A stretch of 63,757 bases of DNA, counting the filler, from Salisapilia sapeloensis CBS 127946 (Eukaryota; Protista; Oomycota): NCBI GenBank assembly GCA_023334545.1. It is 13 parts of 13 records of this genome, joined end to end, with 100 filler letters (N's around TTAATTAATTAA, not from the genome) between each part and the next. Parts side by side here need not be neighbours in the genome. Positions count along the whole stretch, not along the records: positions 18,385 to 23,868 come from JAADVB010000614.1; 12 more parts are not named here. The stretch is one strand, 5' to 3'. Below, one piece after another: positions 5,604 through 23,570 of this stretch. The notes beneath the pieces were generated by a model, which was given only the letters and a program-made list of their open reading frames with translations, was not told the DNA's origin and made no database searches. The number at the start of each line of letters is the position of its first letter. The stretch's first letter is position 1. The translations under genes and the position numbers were made by a program.

Positions 5604-7589
5604 ATGGACACAAAAGACACAACGTCGGAGATGCAGACGGAGGCTAGTGGAACCCGATGTGAGATGGCCAGTGTAGCATCCGGCAATGCAATTGTAGTTG
5701 GATTGCAAACGTCTACTGAATTGCAAGGTGCTGGTATGGCGTTCATGCGGGTATTTCAAGGACATGTACAGGTTCTCGGCTTTCGACTGCCTTTAGGGAC
5801 ATACCATCCAATATTTGCACCTAAATGGAGTAGTCAACTCTCTATAGAAGCTAAGGAGCATATCAGGTCGAGTGGGGATGCCAAACAAGGTAGGCATGCA
5901 GTTGATGGCAGCTACCAAGCTCCCATGCAAGAACAGAATCTGCAGTTATTGCAGCTCACAGATTCCACAATGCGCATCTCCAAAGCAGATAATGACTCAT
6001 ACAGCAAACTATCAGTCCAGAAACAGCGTCTCATGGAGGAGGAGTATGAGGCAGATACTCTGGCACGTACAATGGCAAGACGGTTTCCCGTTGTTATTAT
6101 ACTTCGTACCATCCCGACTACATACGGAAATGTATCTTGTTTTTACGAGGCCAAAAACGTCTACGATACAGACCTTGTGCTTCCAGGCTTCAAGCTCATT
6201 CGCTCGAGTACTGATCCTGTGTACGGCGATGTTCAGCAGCTCGATGATGCCCATTCAATTGCTCCGAATAAACAGATTCTGCCGGGTCGGCACGACTGGA
6301 AGAGCTCCGAACGGCTTCTTGACGAACTAACAGTTCGAGATACCGTCCGTCCTGTCTTGATATCGGAGGAATGGGCTGCGACAGCCGATGTGATCGAACA
6401 GAGTCTTGTTACTGAGGCAGCCAAGGACTGTCCGCAACGTGTACTCGTATGCGGTGGCAAGGGTGTTGGCAAGTCTACATTCTGCAGGTACTTGGTCAAT
6501 AGGACGCTATCTCACTTTCGCATGATTGCATTCATCGATACGGATGTGGGTCAGCCTGAGCTCACACCCTCTGGCATTGTATCACTCCACTTGCTTGCTT
6601 CGCCCATTTTGTCCTCTGGTTTCATCCACACACAGACGCCCTTCCGATCCTACTTTTGTGGAGCATCAAATCCGAGCAATGACCCTGACAAGTACATGCG
6701 AGCTGTATCCAACTTGATTCGCCTTTATGAGTGCAAGTGGGGAAAGCACCACGATGGAACGCCAGATGAAGTCATCCCGTTGGTGATCAACACGGACGGA
6801 TGGGTCAAGAGCATGGGCCACGATCTCCTCTGTAGTGTCATACAGGACGCCTCTCCTAACCATGTCGTGCAATTACTCGCAACCGCTAGAAGTAAGCAAT
6901 TTGATGTTCCGACCGACGGACAGTGGCAAGTGCACAAGGTCGAGCCATGGAAAGCTCTTGCCGTGTCCCAGGCAACACGAAGCTCACACGATCTTCGCCG
7001 ATATCGCCTACACGCTCACTTCCTCGCTCGTAGTCCATGCTATCTACCGAGAGATGATCTTCGGAACCTCCAGTGGCCAGCCGAAAAGAACCGATTGGAT
7101 CGCCACCTTCGACTGGCCTACGAACGCATGGTTCCTTATGCCGTGTCATTTGATGCTATCGACGTTACCTTTGTCGGTCCGTCCGTGCCTCCCAGTCAAG
7201 TTCTTGTGGCACTTAACAGGAGCATTGTCGGCCTTTGCTTCCAGGTAAAGAGACCAGACACGCCTGAGACTCACGACTACAAGCCTCCTCGTGTGCTCAT
7301 TCCGTCTGACTCGGTACCTCCATGTCTCGGTATGGGAATGGTACGTTCGATCGATCCGACAAACAGAATGATGTACGTGTTGAGCCCATTGCCAGAACAT
7401 GTCATGCAAAAGGTCAATTTACTCGTGTTGAGTCGCATGCCGTTGGATGCCTTCGTCGGTGTCGACAATGCTTCCTCAGTCTACTCCCCGTACGTTCTGG
7501 ACAACGTCCTGTCGGAAGAAGGCACAGGAGCATCTATGATGTTCAGTCGAAATAGCATCAAACGAAGACGAGACGATAAAACAGGTTAA
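5604..7589 (+). CDS. NOL9: Polynucleotide 5'-hydroxyl kinase NOL9/Grc3 (Clp1 family)
   Basis: 661-aa ORF with the P-loop GGKGVGKSTFCRYLVN plus DTDVGQPE, INTDGW and C-terminal CLGMGMVRSID motifs. Confidence 0.9.
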   Translation: MDTKDTTSEMQTEASGTRCEMASVASGNAIVVGLQTSTELQGAGMAFMRVFQGHVQVLGFRLPLGTYHPIFAPKWSSQLSIEAKEHIRSSGDAKQGRHAVDGSYQAPMQEQNLQLLQLTDSTMRISKADNDSYSKLSVQKQRLMEEEYEADTLARTMARRFPVVIILRTIPTTYGNVSCFYEAKNVYDTDLVLPGFKLIRSSTDPVYGDVQQLDDAHSIAPNKQILPGRHDWKSSERLLDELTVRDTVRPVLISEEWAATADVIEQSLVTEAAKDCPQRVLVCGGKGVGKSTFCRYLVNRTLSHFRMIAFIDTDVGQPELTPSGIVSLHLLASPILSSGFIHTQTPFRSYFCGASNPSNDPDKYMRAVSNLIRLYECKWGKHHDGTPDEVIPLVINTDGWVKSMGHDLLCSVIQDASPNHVVQLLATARSKQFDVPTDGQWQVHKVEPWKALAVSQATRSSHDLRRYRLHAHFLARSPCYLPRDDLRNLQWPAEKNRLDRHLRLAYERMVPYAVSFDAIDVTFVGPSVPPSQVLVALNRSIVGLCFQVKRPDTPETHDYKPPRVLIPSDSVPPCLGMGMVRSIDPTNRMMYVLSPLPEHVMQKVNLLVLSRMPLDAFVGVDNASSVYSPYVLDNVLSEEGTGASMMFSRNSIKRRRDDKTG

Positions 7590-18284: not shown

Positions 18285-18385
18285 NNNNNNNNNNNNNNNN
18301 NNNNNNNNNNNNNNNNNNNNNNNNNNNNTTAATTAATTAANNNNNNNNNNNNNNNNNNNNNNNNNNNNNNNNNNNNNNNNNNNNA

Positions 18386-18488
18386 ATTAAGCCTCAATAC
18401 AATCAGTTCTCATTTTGCTTTCTAAAGCACAAGTGTCTTACACTACTTCCGTACTTTTAGTACAAGAGTTTCATACTCCGCGTCTTAC
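18386..18488 (+). repeat. 103-bp direct repeat, copy 1
   Basis: Matches 23766-23868 with one mismatch (C18484 vs T23864), at an offset of 5380 bp. Confidence 0.97.
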
Positions 18489-18579
18489 GCTTTCCTTACG
18501 TTGAAAGGGCTATCGTTGTTACTTTCGTCACAGAAATAGCTATACGAGTGATACTTTGTATGCGAAACCCGACTTCTTA

Positions 18580-19260
18580 TTTGCGCCAAATCTTGTTGTC
18601 GGAATAAGATCCTGCGCGACAATCAATAGACATAGATTATCCGTTTGCGCCGACAAGAGTTTACACATTAACGGCTGGATAGCCTTATCTACAATAGAAG
18701 CCCTCATGTTCTCTCGGGCGTGGTATCTGTAGGATCGTTCCGTCTATTGCACTCACTACGTCAGGAAAATCTTTAGTTTTCATAAATTCACTCTTGACTT
18801 TAGTCCATTGTTCAGTAGACGTAGGAAAAGAGATTATCGTCGGCGTTATCTTCGAGATTACATTAACAAACATCGTCACATTTTCTTGCATCCATGATGT
18901 CGCCCTTCCAAACGTAATATGAGCTTTTTATAGCCAATTTAAGATGTAAGATAGTACATAAATACAGCAACCTTCTTCTTAAACGAATGTTGCTTTGTAT
19001 ACTTTACCGTCTCTACATCAAGCATTTATGTGGCAAGAAAGTTCACAATTCCTTTAAACATCGACTTCGTACACATCAGGTTCTGCTGAATCCAAGCATC
19101 GTACGATCTGTCGTCAAGCATGCAATCGAACGGCAAAGTGTCCAATGTGAGTGTGTTTACTTTCTCAAAGCTGAAAACTTTTAAAACGGCAAAAGCGGGT
19201 GACGCAGACACCGTAGCTACTGCTAGAACGACGTTGTCATTTTTGTCTTCCTCCGATTGC
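18580..19260 (-). mobile_element. PIF/Harbinger-type DDE transposase relic (stops and a frameshift)
   Basis: DAWIQQNLMCTKSMF...KKKVAVFMYYL...FPDVVSAIDGTILQIPRP...FYCR*GYPAVNV*TLVGANG*SMSIDCRAGSYSDNKIW, the DDE_Tnp_4-type AIDGT core. Confidence 0.85.
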
Positions 19261-19502
19261 TCTTTCAGTGTCGAAACCCTTCCGTAATTTCTGCTAATAC
19301 CAATGGGTCGTTGGTATTAAAATTAATTATAAAAAACCTAGCACAGTTATTTATATCTACCAATCGGAAGTAGTGTACCAGCTCCAAAATACCGATCATC
19401 GGAGTTTCTTAGTTCCCTAATAACGCTCAAGTGTAAATTGTATTTCCTGTAAAGACAGAATTAAAAGAATTATAATTTTATTGTTTTATTGTGTCTGTGT
19501 CT

Positions 19503-19575
19503 TCTCCTATAGCTCAGTTGGTAGAGCGTATGACTGTTAATCATAAGGTCGCTGGTTCAAGCCCAGCTGGGAGAG
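19503..19575 (+). tRNA. trnN: tRNA-Asn (GTT)
   Basis: Complete cloverleaf: acceptor TCTCCTA/TGGGAGA, D arm GCTC/GAGC, anticodon arm TATGA-CTGTTAA-TCATA, T arm GCTGG-TTCAAGC-CCAGC, discriminator G. A T5 run follows. Confidence 0.95.
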
Positions 19576-19898
19576 TAATTTTTATAAATATATGTTGAGC
19601 TACGAATGCTCTTTGCGTATCTTTAAACACTTCCGTAAAGAAAGCAGTAGCGTAAACTTCAAATTTTATTTCATACTAAGGGCATATCTGACGGCGCTTC
19701 CGCATCACTATTCATCTCATGGGGATGAAGACAAGAGCCCCTAAGCCGTTCTCATTGATACAGTTGCGCCTCTCGTCTTTATATCCTCCAAATTTAGGGA
19801 CCCACTTGTCCAAATTAGCCTTTTCGATTGGCCAGTTCCTATAGCGTTTAGATTCCTCATCGGCCATCCCTAATATTTCTCATTTGACTCCCATTAAA

Positions 19899-20166
19899 AT
19901 GCCACAAAGAAAAACGTGGACCAAAGATGAAGAGAAAGCTAATTGCCTCTCTTACATTCGTGCGAGCGAGGACCCTCAGCCCGGAGAAGACTAATCGACA
20001 AATATGTTTTAGGATAAAGTCGTGCAATTATCTGCTGATCAGCAGCCGCAGTCTAGAAGGACTCGAAAGGCTATGGGTAATCGACGGTCTACAATTCAAC
20101 ATAATGTGATGAAATTTCAAGGACTGCACAGTGCTGCAAGTCGAAATTAAAGGAGTGGGGCTTTAG
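19899..20166 (+). mobile_element. Myb/SANT-like DNA-binding gene relic of the kind carried by Harbinger elements
   Basis: MPQRKTWTKDEEKANCLSYIRASEDPQPGED*STNMF*DKVV...RTRKAMGNRRSTIQHNVMKFQG, with in-frame stops at 19992 and 20010. Confidence 0.65.
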
Positions 20167-20384
20167 GGGAGGAAGCCCCATCTATTGCTCACGATATACA
20201 TAAGGGTTATCGTACCTTTTTTAGTATGGGGCCCGGACCAGGTCTTTAGACGAGACACTGGCCTAAATGACCTCTCGTTGATAATTGAATGTCGAATTTC
20301 AACTAATAGAAACGCTATTCAGCCTAAAACTAAAACTGACGAATTAGTGGATGCTCGCTGACTATATCCAAATCAAAGTAGACA

Positions 20385-21854
20385 ATGGATAGGAGCTCAT
20401 TACATCAGGAGGATATACATGCGGGAGATAATGTTATATACTTTAGCCTTGTCTTCGTATGTGGTGACCCTCGTGGTCATCGGATTACTAAAGTACTTGA
20501 GATGAAAAAAGCTGAAAATTCTGACTATCCACTTCATGTTGCAACGGATGAAGTGATACCAGCGACAATGCTTATGCGCCGCGTGCTCGATACAAAAGGC
20601 AATCGAGTAGAAGCAGTGTTATGGCGCAAGGTGCGCACCTATCAATTTATGGTTGGTTGAGTTTTGGCACCTAGTGTCCGACAGCAGTTTAGCGTTGTGC
20701 ACCAGCAAACTGTTCAACAAGCGACTTAGCATGTGTATCGTCGACAAACGAACGAAGCCAGCGACACAGTACATTACGAACCTAGTGGTGAAGAAAGTGA
20801 AAGTGAAGAGCTTTTTCATGCGCAAAGTGAAGTTGTGGAGCCAGCTGAGCGTACCTAACTTACTAGAGACAAAGCCGCTCACGTTATTAACAGCGTTCCA
20901 ACGTATGCGGAGCATCACACGAAGAGACATCGGTGAAAACAGCGTCCAGATGGGTTTCACCTGCGCTACTCTAGACAGAAACGGTATCGGGATAGACGAA
21001 GCGTTGTACGTGACTCGAAGATTATTCGACATGCACGCGCTCTTCTTTTCACGTTTGCCGAAGAATATGCTCTTCTGCCTGCTGTGCAAGCTGCTCTTGA
21101 GTCTACTCGAACGAGCCAAGATGATATTTTCGAGCTGCTACAGACATTGCCCCAGCCAGAACGAGTTGCTGATGGAACAGAAAATACCATAGCTATGAGC
21201 GAGCTCAATACGGTGATTGAGAGTGAAGCCATGTGTGCGGAAGAAGTGAGTCAATTAAGCAATGCGAGTGAGGGCGGCAGCGTGGGTCATTGTATGTGCG
21301 AGACTGAATGCTTCAGAGATGTCTGCCTGAATGCCGCTAGCGCTATGTTTTGCAACGCCTCGAATTGCAACATTCGAGCGAAGTATAAAAGTCGTTCTTT
21401 TAATAGTACCCGTGAGCTCCGCGACTTACACTTGTACGAGTCGAACATTGGCCTAGGTGTTTTCAAGGACATGTCGATAGAAGCTGGCGAAATAATTGGC
21501 GAATACAAGGGCATACTATAAGGCTTCAAGCCATTGGAGGACGGTGGTAACGATGTTACAGGGCAATTAGAATACACCACTGGTTATACGCTTCTGTAAC
21601 AGACACGAGCTGTAAATGGCCGATTTATATGCATAGAATCAATAGAGCGAGGGGGTCTCATGCGATTCTGCAACCACTCCTGTGACTTTAACTGCGTCTA
21701 CTTGGAAATGCGAAATTGGCGCCAAGTTAAGGTGTTTCTTGTAGCTACTAGATACATTAAGCCATTTACGTCAATTACAACAAACTATGGCGAACAACTG
21801 TCCTTTGCATGCAAGTCAAATGCCACCAATCGTGTTAGCAAACAAGTTGACTAG
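20385..21854 (+). pseudogene. Decayed SET-domain gene (GDPRG-type N-terminal domain + Cys-rich pre-SET + SET)
   Basis: ORFs 20385-20660, 21084-21521 and 21660-21854 share one frame, broken by about six stops. Motifs include HCMCETECFRDVCLN, GLGVF...GEIIGEYKG, RFCNHSC and ITTNYG. Confidence 0.8.
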
Positions 21855-21911
21855 TTATCTACTACATTGTGTTTGTTCGTTAAATTTTTCCTTTTCATTA
21901 AATCCTCTCTA

Positions 21912-22575
21912 TCATTTCCGCGCATCCACGAAATTCACTATTATCTGGTGAGTTGGTAGATGCTACGCATGCTAAACAAAAACAAAAATTTTAAATGCTG
22001 TACCCATTCAAAAATTTCTTAGAAGCCCAAAGTATTTTACATATACCTTACACAACAAACCCGCGCATGCATAGATAAGTACAAAATTTACCAGCAACGA
22101 ATACAGTGTTGTTTTGTGTCAAAAAGCGAAATTGACGATGCTGTGCTAAAATAACGGAGACGCTTTGTAAATTCACTGTAGTGTAATTTCCGCGTATGCA
22201 TGGTAAACTACAAGTTGCTTTGAGAGCGATGACACAATTTTTTTTGAGTTGGAGGTACTAACTGAAGATGCTGGGCTAAAACTACATATCTCTACATTCC
22301 CAGCTTCTATATACGTTCTTTATTACTTCTTTCACCAAATTCCCGCGTATCCATAATACAATCCAGCTTTTATAAATATACCGATACAGTAGAAATGATC
22401 TTACGCGCAATAATGAAGGTGCTGTGCTAATTCAAAAAATTTGATGTATTTGAGATCAAATAAGTGACGTATGAACAAATCTCGCGCATCCATAACGTTC
22501 AAACAGGTCTACTACTTACCATGAAATCATCTACATTGAAACCCGAACAAATTTGCCAATGCTGAGCAGTGTCAA
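21912..22575. repeat. Five-unit array of two conserved motifs (A: AAWTYCCGCGYATSCA; B: RTGCTG(T)GCTAA) at fixed spacing
   Basis: CGCG of motif A is at 21919, 22062, 22191, 22344 and 22483. RTGCTG of motif B is at 21995, 22138, 22268, 22419 and 22559. A-to-B distances are 76, 76, 77, 75 and 76 nt. Confidence 0.85.
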
Positions 22576-22582
22576 CGATGAA

Positions 22583-23570
22583 CTATACGTTAAATTTTTT
22601 ATTAAGCCTATCAATGTTGTTTGTAAACCAATTCAACGTTTTGCGGTTCTGCTCTCTGTATTGGTCCATTGCTGCAATTACAGCTTTCCTCGCTTTCGTC
22701 TCATCCCAGCTATACTTCGTTTGGCATTCTGACGTTAGCTGCCGAATAAAGTCGAGAATGCGTCTTCGTCGATTGACGAATCTCCTCTCATCGGCAGTAA
22801 ACCAATTCGACCCATATCGTTGCTCAAGCTCTCGAATAGACTTAAAACCAGGTAAATCATTGTATCATTCAGTCCACAAATCTTGTACTGATTGAATCCC
22901 TCGGCTAAGTTTGTGCATTAATACAGAATTTTCACTAGGCGTGCGCACTGGGACCAGTGCTGTTGGTCGTTGGACATCCTCATGGGCAGCCGCACTGTCG
23001 TCGTTTTGCACTAGCCGAACTTGTAACATGGGAGTGCCGTTGCGCAAAGGGTAAAGTATCTCGTGCACGTCGCCGAGATTTCTTTCCAGGTTCTTTAGAC
23101 TATCACTTACTTGTTCAACGATAGATTTTAAATCATAATGTACTCCGTCTATCTTTGCTGCCAGGCTTGGCATCGCCTTCTGAAACCGCATCTCAGCAGG
23201 TTCATCCATTGCATCGATCGTGTTAATTGCATGCATCTTAAATTTGTTTAACTCACGCGATTGAAACAGCACATGCTGCCACAGTGGATGACAATGTACG
23301 TTGTCAATTAAAAGAGCTGCATCCTGTATAATAACCTTGCGTAGGTATTCTAATAACTCAAGGACACCTCCTGCAACTATCGACGGTTTACATCGTCGAC
23401 TTTCAAACGCTGATTCTCACGCCTCTATCTGCGGGTAAATCTGTGTCGTCAAAACCACGGGAGGTTCGACCATCGATCTAGCGACAAAGTAGCTACCTCT
23501 AACAGGTTCAAAGCCTGCGAGCTTGCGCATAGCTTCGCGTGGAAGTGATGTTAGATAGCATTTGTAACGG
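22583..23570 (-). mobile_element. Crypton (tyrosine-recombinase transposon) relic: NDC10_II-like region + GCR1_C domain
   Basis: One frame with two TGA stops at Trp positions (23417, 22865). It reads CYLTSLPREAMRKLAGFEP..GSYFVAR..VEPP..L..QIYP...LLEYLRKVIIQDAA...HPLWQHVLFQS, then HKLSRGIQSVQDLWTE*YNDLPGFKSIRELEQRYGSNW...ERRFVNRRRRI. Confidence 0.82.

Follow-up and report, generated by a model that had tools for sequence, protein, structure and literature searches.

The window analysed in this study is a 63,757-nt stretch of DNA from the oomycete Salisapilia sapeloensis CBS 127946, composed of 13 parts of genome records joined end to end. In the piece that comes from record JAADVB010000614.1 (positions 18,385 to 23,868), the region 21912-22575 contains five units arranged head to tail, each consisting of a motif A followed by a motif B. 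Two convergent reading frames, each interrupted by stops, point towards the array with their 3' ends, and the array takes up all of the 728 bp that separate them. One of these frames (20859..21854, plus strand) encodes a SET domain (Pfam SET, 21600-21851), contains in-frame TAA codons at 21519 and 21597 and ends in a TAG at 21852-21854, 59 nt ahead of the first motif A. The other (22586..23572, minus strand) is of CryptonF type and ends in a TAG at 22585-22583. The last motif B ends at 22567, leaving a gap of about 15 nt to the Crypton-frame stop rather than the 13 nt or so given in an earlier note on this DNA.

Pfam analysis of the Crypton frame identified NDC10_II, at profile positions 205-317 only, and GCR1_C (PF12550, E 5.3e-10, 22586-22864). 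Pfam and relatives together show that the frame, read from 23572 to 22586, comprises the end of the recombinase (NDC10_II-like) fold and GCR1_C. It matches only the C-terminal part of CryptonF-type proteins, equivalent to residues 117-357 of P0001 and 354-668 of the 714-aa P0014. The N-terminal part is missing, and the full R-H-R-Y catalytic set of a tyrosine recombinase is absent from the frame. In-frame TGA codons occur at 23419 and 22867, where they align with tryptophan in 7 of the 12 and 11 of the 13 aligned relatives, respectively, and a third occurs at 23590, just upstream of the homologous part; the in-frame stops of this frame are TGA without exception. The closest relatives of the Crypton piece, found in Phytophthora parasitica (ANJA01002884), P. 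sojae (JH159167) and metagenome contigs, are 43-46% identical to it, and word-based protein searches with the Crypton and SET pieces gave no matches within the length range searched. The ORF adjacent to the array is a truncated CryptonF remnant with no intact recombinase. The earlier note, which placed the array beside a Crypton ORF, was right that a Crypton-type frame adjoins it, but this frame is an interrupted remnant and no intact recombinase.

The two ends of the piece (18386-18488 and 23766-23868) carry the same 103 nt with one mismatch, and because of this terminal overlap the piece looks like a circular molecule or a tandem-repeat unit of 5,380 bp. The site of the missing N-terminal half of the recombinase is occupied by a fragment of a Harbinger/PIF-type transposase with an AIDGT motif (18688-18927, minus strand) and several in-frame TAA codons. 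An Atlas search with the Harbinger-like fragment returned DDE_Tnp_4 (0.94), and Pfam gave no match to the 80-aa piece. Its presence in place of the Crypton 5' half suggests that an insertion or a deletion truncated the Crypton. The only stops that interrupt the SET and Harbinger-like frames are TAA codons, about two and about seven of them, respectively, and there are no frameshifts; the Harbinger-like TAA stops span 18560-19100 on the minus strand, and the SET and Crypton frames both terminate in TAG. This stop pattern reflects either unusual pseudogene decay or stop-codon reassignment, and TAG-free runs were not significantly longer than in shuffles when TAG was considered as the sole stop. 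The 5.38-kb unit also has an intact tRNA-Asn(GTT) gene at 19502-19576 on the plus strand (ARAGORN and Rfam search, 71.5 bits). Within the array, ten bases of its D-arm (AGTTGGTAGA) turn up again at 21951, inside unit 1.

Motif A (AAWTYCCGCGYATSCAT, five sites) was the top result of the de novo motif search, and motif B (TGAMGRTGCTGNGCTAA) was recovered de novo once A had been masked. The pattern CGCGYATSCA has five matches in the entire window (0.06 expected), all of them on the plus strand and within the array, at 21919, 22062, 22191, 22344 and 22483. A search with the 15-mer TTCCCGCGCATCCAT, allowing up to 3 mismatches, found the same five motif A sites and no others. The pattern RTGCTGNGC has four matches (22138, 22268, 22419 and 22559; 0.28 expected), and motif B of unit 1 is a weaker copy, ATGCTGTAC, at 21995. 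The weakest B copies are those of units 1 and 5; the B extension of unit 1 shows 82% identity over 22 nt to that of unit 4 (repeat family D6). The cores of A and B hold an inverted GCATC/GATGC pair. Since both patterns had been defined after inspection of the sequence, an unbiased five-site log-likelihood motif search was run on 21850-22600 against 100 dinucleotide shuffles. The best motif was A (z 12.3-12.8), and with A masked the search returned B (z 6.4-8.9). The motif array is confirmed as real and statistically robust, and the five two-motif units of the earlier note hold up against the shuffled control.

Pattern scan and motif search located motif A at 21914..21929 (ATTTCCGCGCATCCAC), 22057..22072 (AAACCCGCGCATGCAT), 22186..22201 (ATTTCCGCGTATGCAT), 22339..22354 (ATTCCCGCGTATCCAT) and 22478..22493 (AATCTCGCGCATCCAT) in units 1 to 5, respectively, all on the plus strand. 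On the same strand, motif B of unit 1 was identified through repeat family D6 at 21995..22014 (ATGCTGTACCCATTCAAAAA, 76 nt past A). Pattern scan and motif search placed the other copies at 22133..22151 in unit 2 (TGACGATGCTGTGCTAAAA, 76 nt past A), 22263..22281 in unit 3 (TGAAGATGCTGGGCTAAAA, 77 nt), 22414..22439 in unit 4 (TGAAGGTGCTGTGCTAATTCAAAAAA, 75 nt) and 22554..22568 in unit 5 (TGCCAATGCTGAGCA, 76 nt), the last of these with no subsequent A-run. Unit 1 contains an extra B-like site (GATGCTACGCATGCTAAAC, 21959..21977, plus strand), found by masked motif search 40 nt past A.

Measured from start to start, the A-to-B distance is 76, 76, 77, 75 and 76 nt in units 1-5, whereas the distance from B to the next A is 67, 53, 76 and 64 nt, as the earlier note had stated. 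The unit periods are 143, 129, 153 and 139 nt, and the array spans about 660 bp. Conservation is uneven along the units. Gapless pairwise identity is 0.64-0.68 in the motif windows and 0.35 in the flanks, and averages 0.30-0.32 in the interiors; composition alone predicts 0.27. Local alignment of the interiors and of the spacers gave no significant pair, in agreement with the earlier description of the interiors as largely unalignable, and Tandem Repeats Finder reported no array for the region. Saturated sequence should also gain indels, yet A-to-B varies by only +/-1 nt while B-to-A has a 23-nt range, and this points to selection on the A-to-B distance, as judged from one array at a single locus. 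The comparison supports modules of about 90-95 bp that are constrained in motifs and spacing while their interiors lie at background, as the earlier note had proposed, and it speaks against an ordinary, neutrally decayed minisatellite.

Several further identities were tested and rejected. A coding repeat is contradicted by the absence of any ORF of 60 aa or more within the array; one plus-strand ORF begins at 22569, at the 3' edge. Furthermore, no coding register is kept because the spacings of 75, 76 and 77 nt and the periods of 143, 129, 153 and 139 nt are not all multiples of 3. A splice-site reading was also rejected, as GY...AG is inconsistent among units. When 21880-22600 was scanned for inverted repeats whose arms lie no more than 40 nt from each other, no classical tyrosine-recombinase core site (11-13-bp inverted arms, 6-8-bp spacer) appeared at A or B, nor any hairpins or local inverted repeats of attC type at the motifs. 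The recognition core of Gcr1 is CWTCC (PMC7826247). Gcr1 CT boxes were rejected since CATCC is present in two of the five units only (1 and 5), and CWTCC, which occurs 24 times in the piece, is not enriched in the array. In addition, the variable positions Y and S of motif A fall within the would-be CT-box core, and the GCR1_C binding sites suggested earlier gain no support as CT boxes. A widespread element finds no support either: searches for the pattern A-gap-B-gap-A gave zero matches in viral contigs and, in metagenome contigs, two GC-rich bacterial chance matches only (L001 and L002).

Comparison with CryptonF relatives revealed short-motif arrays near their ORFs, though with other sequences: motifs A and B are absent from all relatives among the 16 fetched loci. 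In P. sojae JH159167 (L012), where the ORF ends near 6760, five GGTACCGCAGTG sites occur at 7018-7150, about 260 nt past the ORF. These sites form the palindrome TGCGGTACCGCA (z 11-12) and are followed by TTGCTGCATTGA at 7169, and about 1.3 kb past the array comes a convergent gene for a C48 peptidase. A metagenome relative represented by L004-L008, which are one locus, has three GTACCGCACTGAC sites and then TTGCTGCATTGA 3' of the ORF; the distance to the GTACCGCACTGAC sites is about 80 nt from the last GCR1_C-frame ORF and about 300 nt from the point where protein homology stops. TGCGGTACCGCA and TTGCTGCATTGA are common to L012 (7018-7180) and L004 (10990-11215) and occur in the same order, and no other nucleotide similarity was found between the two loci. 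Because their order is kept without other nucleotide similarity, the motifs common to these loci are likely to be selected cis sites. L014, a 2.8-kb contig, carries a pair of near-perfect palindromes (196-341) just 5' of a full-length Crypton ORF; their arms measure 25 and 30 nt, they have the core GTTACGTAAC in common and they lie 90 nt apart. L011 has no significant array (z < 1.5). In L010 (7540-7630), two repeats resembling tRNA 3' halves (CCTGGTTCAAGTSCG ... TTTTTG) lie 150-230 nt past the Crypton ORF, and ARAGORN and Rfam report no tRNA there. The A-B pattern, whose linkage to Crypton ORFs the earlier note had proposed to check, thus has no counterpart in the fetched relatives. Its suggestion of recombinase binding sites is made plausible by the 3' short-motif arrays of the relatives, although these arrays lack A and B. 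The cis sequences described for Cryptons are only terminal direct repeats of 4-6 bp, such as GATAAT/ATTATC and TACTTA in CryptonF or TATGG in CryptonS (PMC3212892). ORF-flanking arrays appear to be absent from the description of Cryptons in that paper.

These observations lead us to put forward as the reading we favour, tentatively and well short of regarding it as established, that the array consists of cis-acting bipartite protein-binding modules of a CryptonF-type mobile-element family. Each of the five modules would comprise a site A of about 17 bp (core CCGCGYATSCA) and a site B of about 15-20 bp (core RTGCTGNGCTAA), 75-77 bp apart. One protein with two DNA-binding parts (the recombinase fold and GCR1_C), or two bound proteins, would bridge A and B in a manner comparable to the arm-type and core-type sites of phage attP. 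The units would be old paralogues; during the activity of the family, selection would have acted on the two sites and their distance only, while the 56-66 bp between them drifted to randomness. The 5' half of the recombinase gene would have been lost from the array-bearing copy later. Because the units, in this proposal, diverged while the family was active, a copy that is truncated today can combine random interiors with conserved motifs and spacing. We infer protein binding at A and B, the identity of the proteins concerned, and the ownership of the array by the Crypton rather than by the host or the SET-carrying unit.

Several lines of evidence are in favour of Crypton binding modules. The array begins about 15 nt past the stop of a Crypton-type frame, full-length relatives have short-motif arrays at the same relative place, and the L012 array likewise lies between a Crypton ORF and a convergent second gene. 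The two palindromes 5' of the ORF in L014 count on the same side. Since CryptonF relatives carry short-motif arrays past the ORF, a reading as cis-acting binding sites is plausible, and a distance that stays within +/-1 bp across about 66 bp of unrelated sequence is compatible with a geometric constraint at the DNA level. The inverted GCATC/GATGC pair of the cores agrees with this reading, and RNA-level and coding explanations are without support. On the other hand, neither A nor B was seen in any relative examined, the arrays of the relatives are compact and palindromic with a 21-38-bp period rather than bipartite with a period of 129-153 bp, and L011 has none. The lack of a classical core site at the motifs and the scarcity of CWTCC (two of the five units, without enrichment) also count against Crypton modules. 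Furthermore, the adjacent gene is truncated, so that its own product cannot bind here, and the evidence is one copy of the array, whose owner could be the Crypton, the SET-carrying unit or the host.

The main rival to Crypton binding modules is a cluster of small non-coding RNA genes with common control elements and differing bodies, which we consider possible but on the unlikely side. Read on the minus strand, the genes would have B' (TTTTAGCACAGCATC) as a promoter element placed upstream at a constant distance, A' (ATGSATRCGCGGRAAT) as the start or a common 5' handle, and the variable 45-70 nt as a body that ends in a T run; alternatively, on the plus strand, a longer precursor would be processed into RNAs of about 90 nt, one from each A-to-B stretch, with a short A/B helix closing each of them. 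snRNA-type genes typically fix the promoter-to-start distance across unconserved spacers, and each internal variable segment ends, on the minus strand, in T4-T6 no more than 16 nt from B' (plus-strand A runs at 22010, 22148, 22278 and 22434). A 4-bp A/B helix (GYAU/RUGC) is possible, its variable positions (C/U vs G; U vs A/G) stay paired on the plus strand only, and three of the five plus-strand minimum-energy folds are closed by it. The strand clues are nevertheless opposed, with T runs pointing to the minus strand and wobble pairs to the plus strand, and the plus-strand modules of units 1-4 contain T4-T8 runs that would stop RNA polymerase III. A cmscan search against Rfam at E up to 10 gave zero matches in 21912-22575, and the only tRNA reported by ARAGORN, the tRNA-Asn, lies outside the array. 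Folds of every module and every spacer were weak on both strands and inconsistent from unit to unit, with no common architecture, and the fold z-scores of the A-to-B stretches ranged from -2.8 to +2.0 on both strands, most of them positive. C/D and H/ACA boxes of snoRNAs were absent by eye; NUGA precedes B in three of the five units without a C box. Neither the rest of the piece nor the relatives' loci contain a match to the bodies, and the guide-like RNAs of the earlier note gain no support from Rfam, folding or target matches.

A protein-binding array that belongs to the host or to the 5.38-kb unit and is unrelated to the Crypton is rated as rather unlikely. Such an array might group composite transcription-factor sites in a homotypic cluster, act as an insulator, or serve the partition or replication of the unit as STB does in yeast. 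The constraint evidence is the same as that for Crypton binding modules, the piece closes on itself through its 103-nt overlap, the motifs are missing from Crypton relatives, and the CGCG core of motif A is of alternating purine-pyrimidine type. However, with its stop-interrupted, truncated frames (Harbinger-like, SET and Crypton) the unit looks less like a maintained plasmid than like chromosomal repeat debris, the array is flanked by two 3' ends instead of preceding a gene, and no known factor site was identified in it. That the array is a non-functional relic, a decayed tandem repeat of about 140 bp with patches kept by chance, gene conversion or mutation bias, is improbable. Such a relic would agree with five head-to-tail units of 129-153-bp period, and selection is indeed deduced from one array at a single locus; it accords poorly with motif z-scores of 12 and 7-9 beside interiors at background identity, and with an A-to-B distance that varies by +/-1 nt despite saturation while B-to-A varies by 23 nt. 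Nor is there a bias to invoke, since RIP or CpG decay was rejected as the source of the patchy conservation on the basis of normal dinucleotide indices without CpG depletion. The interiors may instead never have been related: a ruler-like mechanism of a recombinase element could set unrelated segments of about 66 bp between A and B, or the element could express guide-like RNAs with common handles, both of which we hold to be very improbable. Either, if true, would give eukaryotes a cassette or guide system of a kind not known from them. Least credible of all are integron-like or CRISPR-like cassettes, in which a tyrosine recombinase captured unrelated inserts of measured length. Unrelated interiors of near-constant length between conserved motifs, next to the remnant of a recombinase gene, are what such cassettes would give, but the interiors show no attC-like self-complementarity, which with their mostly positive fold z-scores also disposes of the attC-like logic of the earlier note. 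Captured fragments were rejected as well, given that the interiors share only chance 10-13-mers with the piece or the relatives' loci and match nothing in available sequences, and one fixed plus one variable interval suits neither the integron nor the CRISPR model. We know of no integron-like or CRISPR-like cassette system in eukaryotes.

The closest systems we know of share part of the features of the array. Like the arrays of the CryptonF relatives (L012; L004-L008), which have 3-5 short-motif copies, it lies in non-coding DNA a few hundred bases or less past the stop of a recombinase and GCR1_C ORF; unlike them, with their single palindrome TGCGGTACCGCA, 21-38-bp period and extent of about 130 bp, the Salisapilia array has two motifs at a 76-nt distance, a period of 129-153 bp, a length of 660 bp and other sequences. 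In phage lambda attP and other heterobivalent tyrosine-recombinase sites, a single protein with two DNA-binding domains spans sites of the arm type and the core type. The array resembles attP in having two site types at a defined distance beside a recombinase gene, the bridging being a proposal in the case of the array; attP, by contrast, is one site of about 240 bp in which inverted core arms flank a 7-bp overlap, whereas the array has five tandem modules and no core-type site was found in it. Integron attC arrays likewise combine short conserved end motifs and unalignable content with an adjoining tyrosine recombinase gene, but attC sites vary in length (57-141 bp), form imperfect hairpins and belong to ORF cassettes, whereas the modules are of fixed length with no hairpin or ORF. 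The yeast 2-micron plasmid, a small circle with a gene for the FLP tyrosine recombinase, has a partition locus, STB, made of about five tandem repeats of 62-63 bp. With STB the array shares about five non-coding direct repeats on a small, possibly circular unit with a tyrosine-recombinase gene; STB repeats, however, are alignable end to end, and the unit described here has a truncated recombinase and remnants of other elements.

Plant USE and Dictyostelium DUSE are upstream elements placed at a fixed distance in snRNA-type genes. As in such genes, one conserved element of the array keeps a fixed distance to a conserved start region across a spacer that is not conserved, and a T run marks the end; the array departs from them in that 76 nt is longer than usual and that no RNA family or fold was found for it. 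If the modules were small RNA genes, they would represent a new promoter architecture in the lineage. The terminal direct repeats of Cryptons find some echo in TATGG in A' of units 4 and 5 and in ATTATC inside unit 1; these matches could be chance, and the terminal repeats are single crossover sequences at element ends, not arrays. Cryptons are the source of Ndc10/Cbf2 and Gcr1. To our knowledge, how Crypton recombinases find and synapse their DNA, and what role GCR1_C plays, are unknown in the field. If Cryptons have arrays of sites beside the ORF, bipartite here and palindromic in Phytophthora, these would provide DNA substrates for the biochemistry of a poorly understood class of eukaryotic transposons. 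Overall, the array is best filed among the cis-site arrays of mobile elements.
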